From positions 82,150,001 through 82,214,000 of the forward strand of contig NC_087439.1 in assembly GCF_036321535.1 (NCBI RefSeq): a stretch of 64,000 nt of DNA. Direction: 5' to 3'. Below are positions 356-42,600 of this stretch, piece by piece (the first letter of the stretch is position 1; each line of letters begins with the position of its first letter). The translations under genes were made by a program, and so were the position numbers. The notes under the pieces were generated by a model. That model was not told the DNA's origin, ran no database searches, and saw only the letters and a list, made by a program, of their open reading frames with translations. This stretch comes from Camelus dromedarius. Taxonomy: Eukaryota.

Positions 356-3300
356 GTAAGCCCATTTCTCCTCAAGAGAGATGGGTAGACAAGTTTGGCC
401 CCAAGGCCCGGGGATGTTCAGTGGGAAGTAGCAACCGAGGGGCCCTGGAGGACGTGTGTTCTGCCTCACTCAGCAGCCCCTCCTGTTCCTCCTTTGCTCC
501 TAGACAAGCAGTCCCTGCGGTCAGAGCCCTCAGTGATCATCGTGTCCTGCAAAGACGGCCGGCAGCTGCTGAGCATCCCCCGGGCCAGCAAGAGGCATGC
601 TGGGCTCTATGAGTGCTCAGCCACCAATGTCCTAGGCAGCATCACCAGCTCCTGTACCATCTCTGTGGCCCGTGAGCCTGGGGCAGGGACCAAGGCGGGC
701 AGTGATGGGGAACAGTGGGGCAGGGCTTGATGGGCCCTGAGCTGGGCCCAGGGTTTCACTAGGGCTTTGCGTCTCTTGCCAGGTGTCCCAGGAAAGCTAG
801 CTCCTCCCGAGGTGCCCCAGACCTACCAAGACACGGCACTGGTGCTCTGGAAGCCAGGAGACAGTAGGGCACCATGCACGTACACGCTGGAGCGGCGGGT
901 GGATGGTGAGGGGCCAGCAGGCTGGTGGGGGGAGCAGAGGCAGGTGGAGGGTGGAGAAGCCGGGGAGACCTCACAGACAGCACTGGGAGCTTGGGCCACC
1001 CCTCTTGTGGCCTCAGCTCCTCCTCCATGCTGCCTGCAGGGGAGTCTTCCTGGCACCCCGTGAGCTCGGGCATCCCTGACTGTTACTACAACGTGGCCCA
1101 CCTGCCAGTCGGCATGACTGTGAGGTTCCGTGTGGCCTGTGCCAACCGTGCTGGGCAAGGGCCTTTCAGCAACCCTTCCGAGAAGGTCCTCGTCAGGGGC
1201 ATGCCAGGTCAGTGGGACAGGGTAGGGTGGTGGACAAAGAGGGCAGGGAACACTGAGCCCAGGGCACACCCCCTCCTCAGAGCACCTAGTTTTGCCCGTA
1301 GGGCACCATGGTGATGATTTTCTCTATCTCCACTCAGATTCCTCAGCTCTGCCATCTGCTGCTCACCGAGATGCCCCTGTTACCTCAGGGCCAGCCAGGG
1401 CCCCGCCTCCTGACTCTCCTACCTCACTGGCCCCCTCACCAAGCCCCTCCCCAGCTCCTGCTCCCCCAGGCCCCCAATCAGTCCCTCTCGGCCCCTCATC
1501 TTCCCCATCACCCCCCAGCCAAGCCTTGTCCTCACTCAAGGCTATGGGTCCACCACCCCAAACCCCCCCACGAAAGCACAGGGGCCTGCAGGCTGCCCAG
1601 CAAGTAGAGCCTATCCCAGCCAGTGCCCAGGTCTCCCCAAGTGAGCCCAAGTCTTCCGTCCCTGACACTGAGACCCCGACCCCAGCCTCCACCCCTCAAG
1701 GGGTAAAAGCAACATCTTCCTCAACTCCCTTGTATATGGTGACCTCCTTTGTGTCTGCACCACCAGCCCCCGAGCCCCCAGCCCCTGAGCCCCCTCCTGA
1801 GCCCACCAAGGTGACTGTGCGGAGCCTCAGTCCAGCCAAGGAGGTGGTCAGCTCCCCTGGAGGTGGTCCTCCTAGCTCTTCTAGGCCAGAGGGTACCACT
1901 CTGCGACAGGGCCTCCCTCAGAAACCCTACACCTTCCTGGAGGAGAAGGCCAGGCAAGTGGGGCCAGGGCTGGGAAAGGGAAGGAGGACAGAAGTGGGGA
2001 GTGGGTGGAACTTTGGCGACACAGGGATTCAGAGGGAAGACCAGCCTGCCTGGGCCTGGTGTGGGGGAGTGGGAGAAGGGGTGGGGCGAAGGCAGGAGGC
2101 ACAGAGATCTGGGTCCTTAGCACCATTAAGTTCAGATTTTCTTTGTGCCAGGCACCATGCTAAGCTCTTAGCTATTCGATCTCATTTAATTTTCACAACT
2201 GAGAGGGAGACACTGCATTATTCCATTTCACAGATGGGAAAACTGAGGTTAGAGAGGAGAGGTTATGGGATTTGCCTCAGGGACTAAGCCAGTAAGTGGC
2301 AGAGCTGGGACTCAAACCCAGGTTCCTAGGATTGAACTCCAGACCCCACACTGCATTCTTGCCCCCAGGGGATACCTGCTCCCCCTTGCTTAGCCCTCAC
2401 CATGGAGGTGTCTCCCTCTCTCCTCTGAGCCTGTGCTATCTCCACCCAACACCCAGGGGCCGCTTTGGAGTAGTGCGCGCCTGCCGGGAGAATGCCACTG
2501 GGCGAACATTCATGGCCAAGATCGTGCCCTATGCGGCCGAGGGCAAGCGGCGGGTCCTGCAGGAGTATGAGGTGCTGCGGACACTGCACCACGAGCGGCT
2601 CATGTCGCTGCACGAGGCCTACATCACCCCGCGCTACCTCGTGCTCATCGCTGAGAGTTGCGGCAACCGGGAACTCCTCTGTGGGCTCAGTGACAGGTAC
2701 TGGGCCTTCTAGGGGAGCAGGGAGGGAGGGTGGGGAGAGCTGGGCTCGGATATCACCTGTTCCCTCCCCCACCTCTCCAGGTTCCGGTATTCAGAGGATG
2801 ACGTGGCCACCTACGTGGTGCAGCTGCTACAAGGCCTGGACTACCTCCATGGCCGCCACGTGCTGCACCTGGACATCAAGCCAGACAACCTGCTGCTGGC
2901 CCCTGACAACGCCCTCAAGATCGTGGACTTTGGCAGCGCCCAGCCCTACAACCCCCAGGCCCTGCGGCCCCTTGGCCACCGCACGGGCACACTGGAGTTC
3001 ATGGGTGAGGGCACCCTGCCAGCCAGGGTTGGGGTTGGGTCACTGCCAAAGGGGCAGCAACCAGGGCTTACCCCACTTCACTCACACGTGTGCCATTTAT
3101 ATGCAAGCACTGAATTAAGTCCTTTCCATGGATTTTAAAAAAATTTCTCTTTACAGTAACCGTTGAAACTGGCATATCACCCCCATTTTACAGATAAGGA
3201 AACAGAGGTGCATTGAGGTTAAGTATTTGTCTAACATCAGACAGTTATAAATGGTAGAGCCAGGTATTTGATAAAGCTGGAAAAACAGGAGAGTCAATTA

Positions 3301-4804
3301 TTAATTTCTATAAATCAGGGAAACCAGCTACCATTTAGCTACCTGCTAAATACTTTCTGTTTATTATCTCCATTCCTTAGAGTTATTCTGCAAGCCACAC
3401 TTTACAGATGAGGGGATGGAGAGCCAGGCAGGTCTAGTACATTGCCCAGGGTCCTGGAGCTAGAAGGGGCAGGCCTGGGATTAGAGCCAGCCAAGCTGAT
3501 TTCAAAGGGTCTTAATCTCATTGTTAGCCACGCTGTTTGGGAACTCTACTTTGGAGCTGATCTGAGGGACCTAGTGACCCTGGTTCTCAGCTCCTCTGCA
3601 GTTCTGGTGACCCCCAACTCCCCTTGCACCATTCAGTGCCCTACACCTCCCCAGGGGCCACTCTGCCCACTGGCATCCAGGGATTGCTATTCTGGTACTA
3701 CCCATGGTCTGGTGACCTGGGCATCCTGGTCCTCAAGCCCCTAGGGACCTCTTCTGCCCCTCCCTGCTCCCTTGCCATCAGGAAGCTGGTTCAATTTGGC
3801 CTCTTGTCTCCTGTCAGCTCCTGAGATGGTGAAGGGAGACCCCATCGGCTCTGCTACAGACATATGGGGAGTGGGTGTGCTGACGTACATCATGTGAGTG
3901 CCCCTGGGACCACCTTCTACCTGCACCCTCTCCCCCACCCACCTCCCTAGCCACACATGCATGTGCACACTGGTGCACACATACATACACACATGAGTGC
4001 CCAGGTGCGAGTAGCCTTGTCTCTGAGCTCCTCTGAGCTCTGTGTCCCTAAGAACCCCCACACTAATGTCCCCCTGGACCTGTAACCCTCAATTTGCATA
4101 TGTCAGTTGAACTGTCTCCACCGCAGGCTCAGTGGACGCTCCCCATTCTACGAGACAGACCCCCAGGAAACAGAGGCTCGCATTGTGGGGGGTCGATTTG
4201 ATGCCTTCCAGCTGTACCCCAACACGTCCCAGAGCGCCACCCTCTTCTTGCGAAAGGTCCTCTCAGTACATCCCTGGTGAGTGGGTCCCACACCTGCCAA
4301 CCTCTCAGCATGACCTGCCCCTGCCTAGCCCATGCCTAATAATACACTGTGGCTGCTGCTGCTACTACTACTACTATTACCGCTACTACTAAGTGGTTGT
4401 ACTACTACCATGTAAAGCCCGTAACAGTCCTGTGACATAGGCAGAATCACTGTCCCCATTCCAGAGATTGGGAAACTGAGCCCCAGAGTTGCCCAAGATC
4501 ACTTACCAGGGATGAATCCAGGATTGGGGCCCCCATCTCTGGGAGGGTGGGGCCCCGCCCTGGTCTGGGGCCCATCTCTCCTGGCTCACGGTCCCCGGCT
4601 TGGCCTGGCAGGAGCCGGCCCTCCCTGCAGGACTGTCTGGCCCATCCATGGCTGCAGGACGCCTACCTGATGAAGCTGCGCCGCCAGACGCTCACCTTCA
4701 CCACCAACAGGCTCAAGGAGTTCCTGGGTGAGCAGCGGCGCCGCCGGGCCGAGGCCGCCACCCGTCACAAGGTGCTGCTGCGCTCCTACCCAGGCAACCC
4801 CTAG
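239..4804 (+). CDS. SPEG: SPEG (striated muscle enriched protein kinase), 3' part: Ig, Fn3, Pro-rich linker, second Ser/Thr kinase domain
   Basis: join(239..355,504..671,783..905,1040..1207,1338..1953,2457..2696,2781..3004,3818..3893,4127..4276,4612..4804). Phases are consistent; kinase motifs [20 protein letters not shown]; C-terminus LLRSYPGNP*. The gene starts upstream of the window. Confidence 0.96.
504..671 (+). CDS. SPEG: SPEG exon (Ig, KQSLRSEP...[10 protein letters not shown])
   Basis: tag/AC ... GCCC/gtgag. Confidence 0.93.
783..905 (+). CDS. SPEG: SPEG exon (Fn3, first half)
   Basis: cag/GT ... GATG/gtgag. Confidence 0.92.
1040..1207 (+). CDS. SPEG: SPEG exon (Fn3, second half)
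   Basis: cag/GG ... CCAG/gtcagt; [16 protein letters not shown]. Confidence 0.92.
1338..1953 (+). CDS. SPEG: SPEG exon (Pro/Ser-rich linker to kinase start YTFLEEKAR)
   Basis: cag/AT ... CCAG/gcaagt (GC donor). Confidence 0.9.
2143..2350 (-). mobile_element. MIR SINE
   Basis: MIR core ccatttcacagatgggaaaactgagg...gggactcaaacccagg. Confidence 0.75.
2457..2696 (+). CDS. SPEG: SPEG exon (kinase N-lobe GRFGVVR)
   Basis: cag/GG ... ACAG/gtac. Confidence 0.94.
2781..3004 (+). CDS. SPEG: SPEG exon (catalytic loop and DFG)
   Basis: cag/GT ... ATGG/gtgag. Confidence 0.95.
3103..3270 (-). mobile_element. MIR SINE
   Basis: ccccattttacagataaggaaacagagg...ggttaagt core. Confidence 0.7.
3818..3893 (+). 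CDS. SPEG: SPEG exon (APE...DIWGVGV)
   Basis: cag/CT ... TCAT/gtgagt. Confidence 0.93.
4127..4276 (+). CDS. SPEG: SPEG exon (LSGRSPF...VHPW)
   Basis: cag/GC ... CCTG/gtgagt. Confidence 0.93.
4352..4408. repeat. Compound (CTG)/(CTA) trinucleotide microsatellite
   Basis: gctgctgctgctactactactactattaccgctactact, next to a MIR fragment. Confidence 0.75.
4612..4804 (+). CDS. SPEG: SPEG last coding exon
   Basis: cag/GA; [14 protein letters not shown]...GNP TAG. Confidence 0.94.
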
Positions 4805-7784: not shown

Positions 7785-7995
7785 CTAAATAAAGAGACTG
7801 CTTGGGTTGGGGGCAGGGGCTGGGGTCCCCAGGGGCTTGGGGCAACCACATCAAACAAGGCAAGGAGGGGAGTGATGTATAAAGCCTGGGCCTGGAGCTA
7901 AATACCTGTCCATGATCCTGCTGTGCCATCTGGAAGGGCTCCGTGCCACCTGCTACCCAGTTAGTCGACCCAAGTCCTGAAGTTGACCCTTCACG
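7785..7995 (+). promoter_or_regulatory. SPEGNB promoter and non-coding first exon
   Basis: TATAAA 7878-7883; MEF2-like CTAAATAAAG 7785-7794 (1 mismatch); donor ACG/gtgagt at 7995/7996 matching the acceptor ccag at 8123-8124, directly before the ATG. Confidence 0.6.
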
Positions 7996-8124
7996 GTGAG
8001 TCTGGATCCTCAGGTCAGCCCTAGACACTCCCACTTCAGGGGATGTTCTGAACCTGCAGGGAAAAGGCTGAAGGTCAGAGTCCTGTGTTAGCCTAGACCC
8101 CCTTCTTTGTTTTCTGCTCCCCAG

Positions 8125-10031
8125 ATGTCCAAAGCAGCTCCTGCCAAAAAACCAGCGGCTGCAGCCCCGCCTCCGGGATGTCCCGTGGATATCAACGACC
8201 CCCAGGTCCAGAGCGTGGCCACTGGTATCAGGCCTCTTACCGCGGCCACAGGTGAGGGGGAGGCCTGAAGAACCCGCTTCCGGAGAAAGGGAACTGGAGC
8301 TGCAGAATGCTCATCCTTGCATTTAGGGGATGGAGGAGGGCCGAGCATAGTGTCATGTACCGCTAGGGTCACTGGACTTAGGAAAGAGCAATTACTGAGG
8401 TGTGGAAGGGTGGGCCACAGAGTAGATACTTTTATCAGGGTAACAATTTAGGAGTGGCTGCCCCTCCCCCATGTTTAAAGGTCTAGTGGCCGAGGGGACG
8501 GGCAGGGGACCATGTATGGATGTACAGAACTGCGGGCGGGTCAGAACTGAGTCGTGGGAGCTCTGGGCCCTGAACCCGCCTCCGGCTAGGTCCCGGAAGG
8601 CACTGCGCGGGAAGAGGCCGCCGCGTTTGCTGGAGCCGCTGAAGGATGTGGTGCTGATCGAGGGCAGCGCGGCCAAGCTGACTTACCGCTTCGGCTTTCC
8701 CGGACCCATTCATCCACTGGAGCAAGGATGGCAAGGAGCTGCGCGACGGGCCCAAGTATCGCTATGTCTTCGGAGACCCTGACGTAGTCACACTGGTGGT
8801 GAGCGATGGCGTGCTGGTAGACCTGGGGCAGTACAGCATTAACGTAACCAACCACTTTGGCCAGTGCTCCGACTTGGCGCGCATCCTCGTGGAAGGTACG
8901 CGCGCCTGGAGTACAGTGCCACCGCGCAGAACAGCACCACCCAGCAGGCGCGTAGCCGGGTCCAGCCGCGTTTACCGTCGGGCCTCACTGAGTTCGGACG
9001 CGGATGTGGCCCAGACCCAGCACAGCTTGAGACACAGACCAGGGTGCAGCGTAGGCCGCCCGTGGCCCTTTCCTACCCTAGGACCCTGTTCCATCCAGGT
9101 TAAGAAGTCCGCTATGGGCTTCAGTCACTAGACTCCAGGGCCCCAAGGTCACAGGGAGTCAGAGGCAGAGCCAGGTTTAGAGTTTTGGTCTTCCGGCTCC
9201 CTGCCCAGGGCGATTTCCAAATCACCGCGAGATGTGTGAATATTCTTGGGCTTTCACCCCGTAGTATCTCTTTTGCTCCTGGATTCAACTTGAGGGGCAG
9301 GATTAGTCCTGTTTGACAGTTGAGGAGTTGAAGCCCCAAAGAGGCTAAAGACTTGTCCAACGTCACACAGCCAGCCTAAATCCATTTCGTATTTAGAACC
9401 GACTATTAGCCGGGGAGTGATGCTCCTGCTCATCTTATCTCTCGGTGCCTCAGTGGGTCGCATTCCCTTTCCATTCCTCTAGTCCCGGCGAAGATTCAGA
9501 AGGGACCGAATGACACAAAGGCACACAAAGGCACCACGGTTACGCTGACTGCAGAGATCTTGGGCGCGCCTGCGCCGGAAGTGGGCTGGACCAAGGACGG
9601 CGAGGACATCGAGGAGGACGACAGGCGACGATGTGGACCTGCTGCAAGGATAGCGCCTGGAGCCAGAGCTTGGGCGGCACAGGGCCCAGAAACGCAGGAG
9701 TGGGACGGGGGCAGGAAAATGGGAGGCGAAGAACAGAGCTGGCTAATTAGTCCTGCCCAGGTCGCGCGTAAACTGATCCGAGGTCCTGCCATCCCCCTCT
9801 TCCCCGCTAGGGTTTTCTTCGGTATCAGCAGCACCACCACGACGCTGACCAGCCGCCGGGCCACGCCCGAAGACAGCGGCAAGTACGAAGTGTATGTGGA
9901 GAACAGCCTGAGCATGGACCAGAGCTTCGGTCTCGTGGATGTGGCCAGAAAGTGGCCCTCATACACTTCGCCCTGGCTTCAAGCTCTGGGGTCGTTGGGA
10001 CCGACAACCCTGCTTCATATTGCTTAATAAA
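8125..10031 (+). pseudogene. SPEGNB: SPEG neighbor (IQ motif + 2 Ig domains), inactivated unitary pseudogene
   Basis: Exon remnants 8125..8251, 8590..8895, 9483..9624, 9811..~9949 translate to MSKAAPAKKP..., LEPLKDVVLIEGSAAKLT, WSKDGKELRDGPKYRY, WTKDGEDIEEDDR, DSGKYEVYVEN. Lesions: -1 frameshift at ~8229, TGA at 8640-8642, -2 frameshift at ~8690, GC donor at 9625, former stop now AGA at 9947. AATAAA at 10026-10031. Confidence 0.85.
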
Positions 10032-11569: not shown

Positions 11570-11609
11570 ATGCTCAAAGCTGTGATCCTGATTGGAGGCC
11601 CTCAAAAGG
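11570..11609 (+). CDS. GMPPA: GMPPA coding exon 1
   Basis: [15 protein letters not shown]/gtgag. Confidence 0.93.
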
Positions 11610-14600
11610 GTGAGGAGCCAGGAGAATGGGGGGAGGAGGTTGGGCTAGAGTGGTTGGTAGGGTGGGGGCAGTGGGAGGCAGGAAGCTGAAATGTGCTTCT
11701 CTCTCCTCTCCCAGGGACTCGCTTCAGGCCTTTGTCTTTTGAGGTGCCCAAACCCCTATTCCCTGTGGCGGGGGTCCCTATGATCCAGCACCACATTGAA
11801 GCTTGCGCCCAGGTAACCCCATGGACTCCCCTCTCCCACCTCACTTCCTGCTCATCTCCTTCATGTTGTATTTTCCCTTTCCCAACCATGACCTTCCCAG
11901 GAGGCATAACTTCAGAGACCACCATTTACAAATGACACTGTGAGTGGCGCCCCCCAGAGTTCTGTAGTGCAGCCGCCCTGCTGTCTTCCCTTAATCTAGT
12001 CTCTCATCTGGCTTCAGGCTTAGATTTCCCTCCTTTTTTTAAAGCGTGGAATGTGAGATCAGCCAAGAATCTTAGAGACAATTTAATGCTGTAGCAGGGG
12101 AACTTTAATAGCAAAGTGCAGAACTTAAACCCTTGCTCTCTGTGGAGCTAATTTCTTTGTTGCTTTTGGTATTGGGACAGGCAAAGTTTTATTTGAATAC
12201 AGTCTCTGCCTGCTGCAAGGATTTGAGCAAATATCTCACCCTTCCTGAGCCTTAGTTTCCTTATCTGTTAAACGGGGGTGATTGGACCTGCTTTTTGGGG
12301 TGGCTAAGCTTGCAAAGATGTTTATAAAGTGCCTCGTAGGATGTAGGCACTTGGTATATGGTGTCCTCACCTCAAGCTCAGATTGACAGACAGTAAATAT
12401 GGTGGGGGGAATGAATGGATTATCCTTTAATGCAGCTTGGTATACAGAATCTTTCCTAGGGTGAGAACCAATTCAGTTGTGAGGGGGCAGGGGAATAATA
12501 GTATGATAAAAGATTAAAAGATCAGGGACTGAGACTCTCTCCAGTTTTCTCATTGTCCAGAGGAGAAAACAGGCCAAAGTGGTCAAGTGAGTGCCCTAGG
12601 GCCCCACAGCTGAGACTGTAACTGTGGTCTCTGGACTTCTGGGCTGGTAGTAGGGATCTCTCCCTCCTGTCATTCCTTCCAATCAAATTTTTTTTCTCCC
12701 AATCTCTTCTCTTGCCCTCAGGTCCCTGGGATGCAGGAGATTCTGCTCATTGGCTTCTACCAACCTGATGAGCCTCTTACCCGGTTCCTGGAAGCTGCCC
12801 AGCAGGAGTTTCACCTTCCCATCAGGTGTTTGTGCACATGTACTATATGGGGGTTGGGGGGAAGTGCCCTAAGCCTCTGAGTTCTCAAGAGTGGGTTGAG
12901 TCAGCATTTGCTGGACTCGCACGCTATGAGGATTCTTATTTGGGCATCTCTGAATCCCCGAGTTTATTGGTTTTCTCTGTGGGCCTTGGGCAGGTGTACA
13001 CCTGGAAGTAGAAAGAGTAGGGTGCCCAGGCTCGTGGAATCTGTCTCCTCTGATCTCACTGAGCTGGCCCTGGGGTCCCTGGGGACAGGTACTTGCAGGA
13101 ATTTGCCCCTCTGGGCACAGGTGGTGGTCTCTACCATTTCCGGGACCAGATTCTGGCTGGAGGCCCCGAGGCCTTCTTCGTGCTCAACGCTGACGTCTGC
13201 TCCGACTTCCCCTTGAGCGCTATGTTGGATGCCCACAGACACCAGCCTCACCCTTTCTTGCTCCTTGGCACCACGGTGAGGGTGCAGAGTGGGGGATCCA
13301 GAGAGGTTTCTGGAATGCAGGGTATTGGGGAGGCAGGGGCAGCCCAGGAGGTTGGAGTGGGGTCAGGCATCAGGAGGGAGATATTCCAGAAACCCCAGTG
13401 GTGATGGCAGTGGCAGTGGAGACCCTGAGCCCTGTGGTTGCTTAGCAGTCAGGAGCAAGGGAGGGGTGGGGGCAGCTGTCAGTTCTCACCCTTGCTGAAG
13501 GCCTGTCCCTGGTGGAGCTGGGTGCCAGGTGCTATAGGGGAGGGAAAGAAAGAGAGAGAAAACTGACCTTGCTGCCCTGGAGCTGGCGGGTCACTGTCCT
13601 GGTGTGTCTGTCTTTCAGGCTAACAGGACACAATCCCTCAACTATGGCTGCATTGTAGAGAATCCACAGACGCATGAGGTGAGAGCAGAGACAGGGCTGG
13701 CCCAGCACTTGCTCTGTTCATCACCATTCCCCAGCTCCTCCTCCTGGAGAGGAAGCTGGAATGCTGTGGCGTGGGCCCCAGTCTTGTCAGACAGGTGGGG
13801 TATACCCTTGGTTGTTCTTTATATCCCTTCTGGAGAGATTGATGAGAATGAAGGGGTAACAGTTAATTTCCATGGGTGTGGTGCTTCAGTAGATGTATGA
13901 TTAGGGTACTTTGGGAACATGAAAGGAGTCCTAACCAAGCTTTGCCTGGGTAGGGGTGGGGAGGGCTCCCTGGAGAAAGTGAGGTCTGAGCAGAATTAAA
14001 TTTATGTAGATGAAGAAGAAGACAGAAAGGCATTGCAGGTAGAGGGAACGGCATGTGCAGAGGCCTGGAGGCAGGAAACAGCATAGCCTCTCCAGAATTA
14101 CGGCGGTCAGTACATAATCAGCAAGGCAGAGGGTCTCTGTCCCTGTTTGTGACACTCCCTGCTCCTGAGCCTGGCTGACTTTCATGCCCCCCTTATATTT
14201 GTTCAAGCTTTAGTATTAAAAAACATGTAAGAACACACAGGCATATGGATTTTATTTTTAAGTTTTGTGCTAGGCACTGGCTAGGTGTAGAAGAAACAGA
14301 GCCAAAGGACAATCCTTGCTTCTCAGGAACCCTTGGACTACTGGGAGAGACAGTCAAAAACCAACCATTGCAAATGACACCAGTACTAACAGTGGGGTAT
14401 GGTCAGAGGCCAGGGGTGCCCAGACTTGAGAAGCTAACTCTAGGGCAGATCAGAGTGGACTCATGCAGGAAGTGACAATGCCAGCTTGGTTTTGAAGGCT
14501 GAGGTTTCCAGATGAAGAGATGGGAACAGGCATTCCAGGCGTAGGCGTGCAATAGCATGGAGCTGGGTTCTGGGAGCACGAGGAGGTAGGGAGGGGAAAG

Positions 14601-22555: not shown

Positions 22556-22727
22556 NNNNNNNNNNNNNNNNNNNNNNNNNNNNNNNNNNNNNNNNNNNNN
22601 NNNNNNNNNNNNNNNNNNNNNNNNNNNNNNNNNNNNNNNNNNNNNNNNNNNNNNNNNNNNNNNNNNNNNNNNNNNNNNNNNNNNNNNNNNNNNNNNNNNN
22701 NNNNNNNNNNNNNNNNNNNNNNNNNNN
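22556..22727. other. Assembly gap (172 N)
   Basis: N run. Confidence 0.99.
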
Positions 22728-25074: not shown

Positions 25075-25390
25075 NNNNNNNNNNNNNNNNNNNNNNNNNN
25101 NNNNNNNNNNNNNNNNNNNNNNNNNNNNNNNNNNNNNNNNNNNNNNNNNNNNNNNNNNNNNNNNNNNNNNNNNNNNNNNNNNNNNNNNNNNNNNNNNNNN
25201 NNNNNNNNNNNNNNNNNNNNNNNNNNNNNNNNNNNNNNNNNNNNNNNNNNNNNNNNNNNNNNNNNNNNNNNNNNNNNNNNNNNNNNNNNNNNNNNNNNNN
25301 NNNNNNNNNNNNNNNNNNNNNNNNNNNNNNNNNNNNNNNNNNNNNNNNNNNNNNNNNNNNNNNNNNNNNNNNNNNNNNNNNNNNNNNNNN
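25075..25390. other. Assembly gap (316 N) over the ASIC4 promoter/5' UTR
   Basis: N run. Confidence 0.99.
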
Positions 25391-25534: not shown

Positions 25535-26116
25535 ATGCCGATCGAGATTGTGTGCAAAATCAAATTTGCAGAGGAGGATGCGAAACCTAAGGAGAAGGAG
25601 GCAGGGGATGAGCAGAGCCTCCTGGGGGCTGCACGGGGGGCAGNNNNNNNNNNNNNNNNNNNNNNNNNNNNNNNNNNNNNNNNNNNNNNNNNNNNNNNNN
25701 NNNNNNNNNNNNNNNNNNNNNNNNNNNNNNNNNNNNNNNNNNNNNNNNNNNNNNNNNNNNNNNNNNNNNNNNNNNNNNNNNNNNNNNNNNNNNNNNNNNN
25801 NNNNNNNNNNNNNNNNNNNNNNNNNNNNNNNNNNNNNNNCCCTGCTGCCCCAGCCCCAGTGGCGGGCTTCCCAGCCGTCACCCTCTGCAATATCAACCGT
25901 TTCCGGCATTCGGCACTCAGCGACGCCGACATCTTTCACCTGGCCAACCTGACCGGGCTGCCCCCCAAAGACCGGGACGGGCACCGTGCTGCCGGCCTGC
26001 GCTACCCGGAGCCCGACATGGTAGACATCCTCAACCGCACTGGCCACCAGCTCGCCGACATGCTCAAGAGCTGCAACTTCAGTGGGCACCACTGCTCCGC
26101 CAGCAACTTCTCTGTG
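25535..26116 (+). CDS. ASIC4: ASIC4 coding exon 1 (TM1 hidden in N gap)
   Basis: [15 protein letters not shown]...CSASNFSV/gtgagt; frame preserved across the 197-nt gap. Confidence 0.92.
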
Positions 26117-32422: not shown

Positions 32423-33571
32423 GTAAATCATGGTGGAGGTTTAGGGTCTTGGAACCATCCCAGATGAATGGGGGTGGGAAGGCAGAAAGACAGAGACCCT
32501 GGAGGTGGAGATAAGAGGGTTCACAGTGCTGTGTGTTTTCCAGAAGAGGGAGGGGGTGTCTGCAATTCTTCCCAGGTCCCCAGGCTGGGGATGGCAGCGC
32601 TGAAAATCCAACCCACGCCCCTAAACGTTCACCATACCCTTGGGACACCAGTTTTGGGTTGGATGGGGGAGCAGTTCCAGAGATACAGGCATAGGCTGCA
32701 GCAGCCGAGGCNNNNNNNNNNNNNNNNNNNNNNNNNNNNNNNNNNNNNNNNNNNNNNNNNNNNNNNNNNNNNNNNNNNNNNNNNNNNNNNNNNNNNNNNN
32801 NNNNNNNNNNNNNNNNNNNNNNNNNNNNNNNNNNNNNNNNNNNNNNNNNNNNNNNNNNNNNNNNNNNNNNNNNNNNNNNNNNNNNNNNNNNNNNNNNNNC
32901 GGGCCAGGGAAGCGGGGATGGGGGGCTGGTCAGGCCCCTGGGGGACTGGGGACCCTTGGGCCACTGCGCAGTAGGGTTGGATCCTCTCCAGTGGGGGTGC
33001 TAGAGGGAGCAAACGGGGTGTTGGGGAGCCCTGGGTTCCAAGCAGGGATCCCATCTCTGGGGCGCAGCTTCACCGGCCAGTGCTGACCTCCACGTTCCAC
33101 ACCCGCCCTGCTGAGGATCTGAAGCCGCGGGTTCAAATCCCATTGGAATCGCTCTGCGCCCCTCGGCACCCTCGGCCTTTCCCTCTGCAGCCATCTGCTG
33201 GGGGCCCCAGTCCCGCCGTCCCGGCTCGCGCCCCCTCGCCCTTCCCCGGCCGCGGAGGGCGGCTAGAGGCGGTGTCTCCCTCCGCGGTGGAAGCCTCTGG
33301 CGCGGCGGTGTGCGGAGGTCACTTTGCCGAGGAGCCGGGAGCCGGGGGAATGCAAATGAGGCAAACCCAGGGAGGAGAGCGGAGGAGCCCGGAGGAGACG
33401 GGAGGGAGGGCGCCCGGGCGCCGTGATGGATGCCTGCCCCGCGGGAGGGAGGAGGGGGCGCGGCGAAGAGCGGGAGGCGGTGGGTGCGGCCCTTCTGGGT
33501 GCGGGTGGGCCCGGCCTGCATGCTCGGGTGTACGCGCGGGGTTGGGGGTCACTGGCACACTCACTCACCCA

Positions 33572-39600: not shown

Positions 39601-42600
39601 CGCCACAAGGGCGGCCCCAGGCCCCCAGTTCTTAGAACTCCTCACTCCCACAGCCCTCAACTCAGCCCTTTCCCTTCCACACCCTCCCTGTGGAGCTAGG
39701 CATTTCAGAATCTTTCCCTAACCCTGCCTTGTGCCTTTTCTCCCAGCTTTTACCAAAGTGAAAATGTTCCCAAGTAGAGGGGAGGGAGAGAGAGAGAGTG
39801 ATTGAGTGCACCGACCCCTTACCCCCAGGGAAGGTGCTGCCTGTGATGGGTTTGACCCTGGGGCTGGTCCCTGTGGGGTGAGCCTGGCAGAGGGGAACTT
39901 CCATCCGCCTCTCTCTCAAGCTCCTCCCCACCCCAGCTGCTCTCAACTCCCAACTGCAGCTGTGTTCCCAGCCGGAGCCTGTTTCTATCTCCGGGGCGCC
40001 AGCTCCATCTGGTGTCCATGCTGGAGAACTTTTTGCAAAGGATGCTTATTAAAGCATCCCTGTGCCCTGCTCTGGGCCAGGTGCTGGGGACAGCAGACGG
40101 GCTCATTGCCCTTCTGCAGCATAAACTCAAGTGAGGAGAAGCTGGATATTGAACACAGGGGCAAATAGACAATCATCGCAGGTCTTTTTTATTGAAGTAC
40201 AGTCAATTACAATGTGTCAGTTTCTGGGTACAGCATCATCTCAGGTCTTGATGAGTACTTTGAGCAAATCAACAATCACATTGTGGGGGGAAGATGATGC
40301 TGTGTGGTATGAGTCTGCATCTGAAGAAGGGACATTTAAGCTGAGGCTTAAAGGATGAGCAGCCAGCCATGCCAGTTGTAGGTGAGGGGCATTCCAGGAG
40401 AGGGAACTGAATAAACAAAGGCCCCAGGGAGGGAAGTTGTTCCATAAGTTTGAAATTGTCACAGAGATCTGGGAGTGGAGAGGCAGCAGAGAGAGGCAAA
40501 GGTTTCCTCACGTTGGAGACTTTCAGGCAAGGGAAGCAATTTGGTTTTATTCTCTGTAAAATGGGAAGTCATTGTTGGGCTTTAAGCTGGTGAGTGGCTT
40601 GACTGGATCCACGCAGTGTAGACCGAGCACTATGGCTACTGCGTTATGAATGGCTTGGAAGGAAAGGCAAGGAGGGATGAAGGGACACCAGTTAGGGCCC
40701 GCTGCCATAAGCCAGGGGAGAGGATGGTGAAAGGGGGACACGAGATGGAAGGAAAGTGGATAGATCCTAAGTAGATTTCAGAAGTCTAACTGCCCAGGAC
40801 GGCTGCTGGATTGGATGCAGGGTGAGGGAGAGATTTCAGGGATCCTGACTTGAGAAATTAGGTAGATAGTGGGGCCCTTTACTTGGTGGTGGAAAATGGT
40901 GAGGAACAGGATTTGGGAAGATGTCAAGAGTTCTGCTGTTGATATGTTAAGCTGGAGCTGCCTTTTAATCACCTAACTGAGGGTGTCAGTAGAAAAGATG
41001 GAGCTCGGGGAGAGGCTGGGCTGTAGGTTGGTTGCTGGGATATGGGACAGGGGGCTCCAGGCAGGTCTGGTGCTCCTCACAGGGGACAGGGAAGCCTGAG
41101 CCTAAGGCATTGTCTTCCGTCTCCCCTCCTCTTCTCTCTTACCCCCAGGTCTATACTCGCTATGGGAAGTGTTATACCTTCAATGCGGATCCACAGAGCT
41201 CGCTGCCCAGCCGGGCAGGGGGCATGGGCAGTGGCCTGGAGATCATGTTGGACATCCAGCAAGAGGAGTACCTGCCCATCTGGAGAGAGACAAGTATGCA
41301 GGCAGGAAAAGGACAAGGGCTCCAGCCTGGGTCCTCTCTGCCTGGGATGGGTTTCCAAAGGTCTCCATCTCCATTGTGCAGACGAGACATCGTTTGAGGC
41401 CGGCATCCGAGTACAGATCCACAGCCAGGAGGAGCCACCCTACATCCACCAGCTGGGCTTCGGTGTGTCCCCAGGCTTCCAGACCTTTGTGTCCTGCCAG
41501 GAACAGCGGGTGAGCCCCGCAAGCTGGGTCCTGGGTTGGGCCCAGCACCAGGCCTTTGGGCTCTGAGGGAATGCTGTCCAGATCTGCCCTCCAGAAACTC
41601 CCATCCCTCCAGCTCTCCTGTGGACTTTGCCAGGGCTGTGGGCACTGGAGGGCTGGGTGGGACTTCTGGGTGTAACCCCATCATGCCCCGCCTCNNNNNN
41701 NNNNNNNNNNNNNNNNNNNNNNNNNNNNNNNNNNNNNNNNNNNNNNNNNNNNNNNNNNNNNNNNNNNNNNNNNNNNNNNNNNNNNNNNNNNNNNNNNNNN
41801 NNNNNNNNNNNNNNNNNNNNNNNNNNNNNNNNNNNNNNNNNNNNNNNNNNNNNNNNNNNNNNNNNNNNNNNNNNNNNNNNNNCAGCCCTCCAGGGGCAGA
41901 ACACTGCTCCTGTGCATGGGGGCTGGTGCATGTGTACAGCGTGTGCATATGTCTCTACCCACGTGAGTGTACACGGTATGTGTTTGGATTTTCTGCATGT
42001 TTTCATATATGCACATGGGAGTGTGCACATGTGTGTTTGTGTGCATGTTAATATGTATTTATGCATACATGTACTTGCGTTCATCTCTGCTTGTGTACTT
42101 GTAGGGATTGCGTGCATGTGCTTGAACACGTGCATGCAAATGTGTGTGCATCTATGTGCCCCCAAGCACACATTGGTTTGTGTGCATATATGCATGTGTA
42201 TATTTTCATGCTGATATGCACCAGCATGTATAAACTCACATATGCATGTGTATGTGCAAACACACACATGTACGGGCATGCATGTGTGTGCCCACATTTG
42301 GGAATGTTGTGGGGGAGCACGGATGGAACCGTAGACTCCAGGAATAATCTTCTCTCCTTTCAGGCAATGAGACCATCTGCCCGCCAAATATCTACATCGA
42401 GTGTGCTGACCACACACTGGGTCCGTGCTGCCTTCTCCCCTCCCTGCCTTTCGTCACCCTCTTCTTCATCTCTCTGTCCACCCTTCTCCTCACTGTCTTG
42501 GTTCCCCTCCTCCCAGTCTCTTCCTAGGGGGCTTCTTCCTGGGGGGTTGAGCCGTATCCCCATACTTCCAGGGGTCTGAGGACCTTTGCAGGTGTGTTCC

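Follow-up and report, generated by a model that had tools for sequence, protein, structure and literature searches.

The orthologue of SPEGNB in the dromedary (Camelus dromedarius) lies on the + strand between SPEG and GMPPA, at positions 8125-10031 of the stretch of 64,000 nucleotides analysed here (the window, whose numbering is used throughout). The four terminal exons of SPEG map to 2458-4774, and the last three of these four show 96-100% protein identity to a whale SPEG fragment. GMPPA starts at 11570-12911, as placed by alignment of the annotated whale and felid GMPPA starts. The same gene order, on the same strand, is found in the whale, felid, cattle, muntjac and rhino loci. A first-pass annotation of the window had proposed a four-exon SPEGNB gene between SPEG and GMPPA, and this is confirmed by exon alignment and by synteny on both sides. 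It had also described five neighbouring genes as clean, which holds for the four terminal SPEG exons, the only neighbour exons checked, where no frame break occurs (0/4). Five runs of N, 1060 bases in total, are located elsewhere in the window (22556-22727, 25075-25390, 25644-25839, 32712-32899 and 41695-41882).

Intact SPEGNB, also called CAVP-target protein, has 238 residues in whales, carnivores, bats, afrotheres, primates and people; the length of 238 residues given for the human protein in the first-pass annotation was right (P0133). In the intact blue whale orthologue (P0010), Pfam places the IQ motif at residues 30-49 and recognises two Ig domains of the I-set type. The whale protein is 69-77% identical to its shark counterparts and 52% identical to that of Ciona. 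We know of no function for SPEGNB in vertebrates. The amphioxus homologue binds an EF-hand protein and, taken together with the Pfam IQ match, this likeness indicates that SPEGNB may engage in calmodulin-type binding. Expression of human SPEGNB is below 3 TPM and confined to tongue and skeletal muscle (PMC9846087), and the pig gene is expressed in longissimus muscle (PMC10137702). A human frameshift allele in exon 2 (Ig1), p.Val64GlyfsTer26 (rs11437065), has a frequency of 0.058 and is tolerated in carriers (PMC11576641).

The exact coding exons were derived from the loci of the blue whale (L001) and two felids (L002, L003), all of which have exons of 128, 308, 142 and 139 bases, and the camel lesions were placed by exon-by-exon alignment of the window to these exons. 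The camel exons measure 127, 306, 142 and 139 bases, their boundaries match the whale and felid exons base for base, and their nucleotide identity to intact orthologues is about 88-91%. All of them lie on the + strand. Coding exon 1 (8125-8251) begins with an ATG at 8125, coding exon 2 (8590-8895) encodes most of Ig domain 1, and coding exons 3 (9483-9624) and 4 (9811-9949), both of full length, encode the first and second halves of Ig domain 2. The start ATG, the splice acceptors, the exon 1 donor and an AATAAA signal (10026-10031) are kept in the camel, and the exon 2 donor also looks kept. Directly before coding exon 1 is an acceptor (ccccag/ATG) that is found in camel, whale, felids and bat. 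Further upstream on the + strand the sequence suggests a putative SPEGNB promoter and a 5′ non-coding exon (7879-7995), with TATAAA at 7879-7884 and a donor CACG/gtgagt whose GT is at 7996-7997. The 423 bases upstream align to the whale at 360/428, no better than introns do. Another AATAAA, probably the poly(A) signal of SPEG (7787-7794), precedes the TATAAA box by only about 90 bases. SPEG and SPEGNB nearly abut, and transcripts running on from SPEG could account for an RNA signal over a dead gene. A gray whale GenBank model (P0132, 1366 aa) fuses the SPEG C-terminus with SPEGNB, which is probably an annotation read-through.

Lesions in the camel coding sequence

Intact SPEGNB orthologues (P0010 from blue whale, P0007 from felids and P0133 from human) occupy the same place and strand as the camel gene and have the same four exons and splice phases, but in the camel one base of the IQ motif, two bases of Ig1 and the stop codon are gone. 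These are three independent lesions that disrupt the ORF. The first is a 1-base deletion in exon 1, between 8228 and 8229, which leaves AT-CAG in place of ATC CAG and hits the IQ motif at its Ile-Gln core. The second is a 2-base deletion in exon 2, between 8689 and 8690, where CGC ATT TCG has become CGC --T TCG within Ig domain 1, just after the Ig1 cysteine codon. The third changes the stop codon, which is TGA in whale, felids, bat, cattle and sheep, to AGA at 9947-9949, so that the frame continues for 25 extra codons to a TAA at 10025-10027; this read-through tail (9950-10031, + strand) overlaps the AATAAA signal. The conserved Ig1 cysteine codon is itself altered, from TGC to TAC (Tyr), at 8684-8686. 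Exon 3 has no frame lesion.

Both frameshifts and the stop loss had been called in the first-pass annotation and stand at these positions. A premature stop that it had listed beside them does exist, as a TGA at 8640-8642 (+ strand) in the shifted frame, but it is reached because of the exon 1 deletion and was rejected as an independent mutation. The product from the ATG has 59 residues, about 34 of them native, and ends at this TGA. Exon alignment revealed no in-frame nonsense substitution in camel SPEGNB. A mutual rescue in which the 1-base and 2-base deletions together restore the frame was also considered and rejected: the TGA at 8640-8642 sits between them, and the IQ motif and the start of Ig1 would be replaced. 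No reading frame can yield a protein with an intact Ig1.

The donor of intron 3, gcgacg (9625-9630, + strand), had been described as degraded, which does not hold. Its GC (9625-9626) was rejected as a lesion since intact felid and horseshoe-bat genes use the same donor. What sets the camel donor apart is its +5 position alone (G to C), and judged from the site sequence this change has possibly weakened the donor. Intron 3 is of the GC-AG type in felids, horseshoe bat, rhino, porcupine and camel and of the GT-AG type in whale and ruminants; the non-canonical GC donor is conserved in intact SPEGNB genes. The claim of several independent lesions is therefore correct as to there being more than one, but the ORF lesions number three and not five.

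Remnants of the protein fold can still be recognised in the camel pieces. Pfam I-set matches are kept with E = 6e-7 and 1e-8, one of them at 8691-8858, whereas no Pfam match was obtained for 8125-8226. The core of the IQ motif is cut by the 1-base deletion. The ORF of about 238 codons is not kept, and the camel locus is an orthologue by descent and not a coding member of the family.

Independent sequence data and the annotated protein

Sampled 31-mers from a 2.1 kb stretch (213 and 195 words) have a share of 1.00 in the Logan contigs of more than 20 runs. Those among them that are not flagged as source runs (X9/X10, X11 and X35-X40) represent at least eight samples from at least five studies, under two coded organism labels (A and B). 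Runs under labels B and C contain 100% of the words. Approximately one word was sampled per 10 bases, with about three words expected over each lesion, and the support consists of k-mer shares and not of a base-level pile-up. Every listed DNA run whose share could be measured contains the full word set; rare variants are lost from Logan contigs, which show the presence, not the absence, of a variant. Neither indel is located in a long homopolymer run: the first shortens a CC pair to a single C, and the second takes out AT. Since full 31-mer support comes from separately assembled samples that are not flagged as the source, an assembly error is unlikely, in agreement with the earlier view that general assembly noise is an improbable cause of the lesions.

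RNA runs hold 37-66% of the SPEGNB stretch. These are libraries labelled as reproductive-tract metatranscriptomes (X15-X18, X28 and X30-X32), and the exons make up only about 35% of the stretch. The share held exceeds the exon share and intron sequence is therefore present in these libraries, which points to unspliced RNA or to DNA carry-over.

A window ORF at 9560-10024, which joins exons 3 and 4 by reading across intron 3, matches 'CAVP-target protein [Camelus dromedarius]' (P0001, 263 aa) at 99% with full coverage, and for this 155-residue ORF over intron 3 P0001 is the only match of high identity. Over 251 residues (8859-8907 left out) the identity between P0001 and the window is 100%, and 62 of these residues are encoded by intron codons. 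Its start is an out-of-frame ATG (8178), from which the 1-base deletion slides the frame into the true one. The model joins exon 1 to a site midway in exon 2 that lies beyond the 2-base deletion, leaves intron 3 unspliced and includes the read-through tail. P0001 is best read as a gene-model artefact built round the lesions, not as proof of coding capacity, and the public 263-residue dromedary 'CAVP-target protein' is unfit for use as a protein. No intact camelid SPEGNB protein was found among the 5.8 billion proteins searched, which is weak evidence on a second copy, and no other camelid SPEGNB of RefSeq type is present among the 120 of 130 matches listed. A camel-specific ORF at 8471-8779, which includes the frameshifted tail, matches only non-camelid ORFs, at no more than 74% identity.

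Relaxed selection and the status of the camel gene

Codon parsimony with the cat as outgroup assigns 21.5 synonymous and 25.5 non-synonymous changes to the camel branch, compared to 6 and 5 on the whale branch and 14 and 1 on the cat branch. Exons 3-4 are as relaxed as exons 1-2, with 10.5 non-synonymous versus 10.5 synonymous changes on the camel branch. A codon model of the Goldman-Yang type was fitted to seven taxa, with no afrotherian or xenarthran outgroup among them and with gapped codons and 8859-8907 (the end of exon 2) treated as missing. The maximum likelihood branch estimates of omega are 0.283 for the camel, 0.049 for the background and 0.51 for Pecora. The camel value differs from the background (2dlnL = 19.4, p = 1e-5) and is below 1 (2dlnL = 15.0, p = 1e-4), with an approximate 95% interval of 0.155-0.52. 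The dN/dS close to 1 that had been expected for this branch was thus seen in part: the ratio is raised (0.283 vs 0.049) but remains significantly below 1. An omega below 1 is what a branch with both a functional and a neutral period should show, and it also fits weak constraint that is still in force.

The protein sequence has changed at positions that are otherwise fixed. The camel differs at nine of the 89 residues that are invariant among 43 intact vertebrate orthologues (A31V, E47A, G52R, C75Y, E105G, A111T, R115S, G227S and R234L), and the radical substitutions reported in the first-pass annotation are confirmed by these nine, C75Y included. Among residues invariant in mammals (19 intact mammals), 23 of 157 are changed in the camel; intact mammals have 0-8 such changes, with a median of 1.

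The camelid stem is about 55-65 million years old. With the branch treated as a mixture of constrained and neutral evolution over this time, the neutral part comes to about 15 million years (range 6-30). Old and New World camelids split within the interval of 6-30 million years, which is compatible both with a loss shared with llamas and alpacas and with one that is not.

Three other readings of the locus were weighed against these data. Indels of one or two bases are the commonest assembly error, and the window possibly comes from the same assembly as P0001, so that their agreement is not independent; the frameshifts could on this basis be assembly or base-calling errors in a camel gene that is really intact. 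This is the least probable of the three and scarcely credible, given that more than 20 separately assembled runs hold every sampled 31-mer, that at least eight samples are not source-flagged and that the indels lie outside long homopolymer runs. It would also leave the stop loss, C75Y and an omega six times the background unexplained. Very improbable too is a dead allele that is polymorphic in camels, as in people, with an intact allele still segregating. The human p.Val64GlyfsTer26 at 0.058 (PMC11576641) provides a precedent, and Logan contigs reveal the presence of variants and not their absence, but the combination of three lesions and about 25 amino-acid changes on one haplotype needs millions of neutral years and the full word set is found in each listed DNA run whose share could be measured.

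The remaining reading, that the lesions are real and the locus nonetheless gives a useful product, is the least improbable of the three and still most unlikely. The product could be a short protein resembling the 263-residue model, a protein consisting of Ig2 only or a regulatory RNA. In its favour, the promoter region, acceptors, exon 1 donor and poly(A) signal have survived, no frame lesion occurs in exons 3 and 4, intron 3 is open in frame, omega is below 1 and RNA runs hold part of the stretch. P0001, however, is without the A-C strands of Ig1, has 62 intron-encoded residues inside Ig2 and ends in a 25-residue tail, and no in-frame ATG occurs from the second frameshift to exon 4. Exons 3-4 are moreover as relaxed as exons 1-2, and Ig2 also loses vertebrate-invariant residues (G227S and R234L).

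The best explanation is that the camel SPEGNB orthologue, in its conserved SPEG - SPEGNB - GMPPA order, is a fixed or near-fixed unitary pseudogene, to which we assign a probability of about 0.88. The proposal that this lineage is a natural knockout is supported by synteny, independent lesions, k-mer support, relaxed omega and the loss of invariant residues. For the greater part of the camelid stem, SPEGNB would have been strongly constrained by purifying selection (omega about 0.05); it would then have become neutral about 15 million years ago (about 6-30) and would have decayed since. With its promoter, acceptors and poly(A) signal recognisable, the locus may still be transcribed into an RNA unable to make protein. 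Classic unitary pseudogenes of mammals include GULO in primates and UCP1 in pigs. In these, likewise, a single-copy gene was inactivated in place in one lineage while its orthologues are functional, and they are recognised, as here, by shared synteny, frame lesions and raised dN/dS. They differ from camel SPEGNB in that no phenotype is linked to SPEGNB loss. No paper on SPEGNB in camels or in ungulate gene loss was found in the library searched; the supplements of whole-genome loss screens may list it.

SPEGNB loss in other mammals

For ruminants and for several further mammals, the SPEGNB matches listed include models that are deviant or marked 'LOW QUALITY'. Five such loci were compared, with SPEGNB copies in cattle (L004, 5935-8033), sheep (L006, 3001-5143), muntjac (L007, 2001-4087), black rhinoceros (L008, 2636-4050) and North American porcupine (L009, 1501-3457). 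Cattle, sheep and muntjac have in common a 1-base deletion at coding position 690, and the same shifted tail is present in a Logan ORF (P0005). In cattle and sheep, moreover, exon 3 has lost the same four bases and a TAC codon of exon 4 has become TAA; only in cattle is one further base inserted in exon 3, and only there is the start region not alignable. The late 1-base deletion is the only frame lesion of the muntjac, and deer may still make an altered protein. From its sequence, pecoran SPEGNB appears to be a pseudogene or at least a decaying gene. Cattle had been suggested as one of the intact references for alignment, a role for which its SPEGNB, apparently a pseudogene itself, is not suited.

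The black rhinoceros copy (single assembly) lacks seven bases at coding positions 230-236 and, through a second deletion, four more, and one TGG codon has become a TGA stop; the copy of the North American porcupine (single assembly) has many indels and two stops. The 2-base deletion of the camel (coding positions 229-230) and the 7-base deletion of the rhino (230-236) strike the same exon 2 bases, CGC ATT TCG GC; this coincidence may be due to chance or to a local deletion hotspot. Further 'LOW QUALITY PROTEIN' models are those of armadillo (P0018), pangolin (P0023) and Amazonian manatee (P0028), where either frame lesions or assembly errors could be involved.

None of the camel lesions is found in ruminants and none of the ruminant lesions in the camel. 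Blue whale SPEGNB is intact, and the pig gene is annotated as coding, with a 236-residue model that is two residues short. The distinct lesions, the intact whale gene and a pig gene with a coding annotation and muscle expression together show that camels and Pecora lost SPEGNB independently. The same gene has thus come under relaxed selection in both (Pecora omega 0.51) and has given rise to deviant annotation models in both, but the lesions are wholly different. The description of the camel pseudogene as lineage-specific is accurate for its lesions, none of which is shared with other artiodactyls, but not for the loss, which is seen in Pecora, black rhinoceros and porcupine too. Human SPEGNB is polymorphic for a break of a similar kind, an exon 2 (Ig1) frameshift. 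The broken human allele is rare (0.058) and the reference intact, whereas the camel lesions are present in every sampled data set and decay is further on.

On balance, it is probable that SPEGNB has been lost repeatedly: a gene under strong constraint (omega about 0.05) would have undergone at least four independent losses in placental mammals (camel, Pecora, black rhinoceros and porcupine), with armadillo, pangolin and manatee as candidates and a loss allele in people. Human SPEGNB is weakly constrained too, as judged by the frequency of 0.058 of this allele (PMC11576641) and by expression below 3 TPM (PMC9846087).

The camel loss alone is an ordinary unitary pseudogene, and its wider value lies in the repeated loss of a tightly conserved muscle gene. 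In loss-versus-phenotype mapping, camel, Pecora, rhinoceros and porcupine are to be counted as separate events, and cattle and sheep are knockouts too. If true, this set of independent losses would make it possible to ask, by forward genomics, which trait of muscle or physiology tracks the loss of SPEGNB, and would open a first way into the function of this IQ-Ig muscle protein. That the gene is conserved from shark to whale at omega 0.05, and that several large herbivores and some people nonetheless do without it, suggests a specialised role in muscle that is only conditionally needed.
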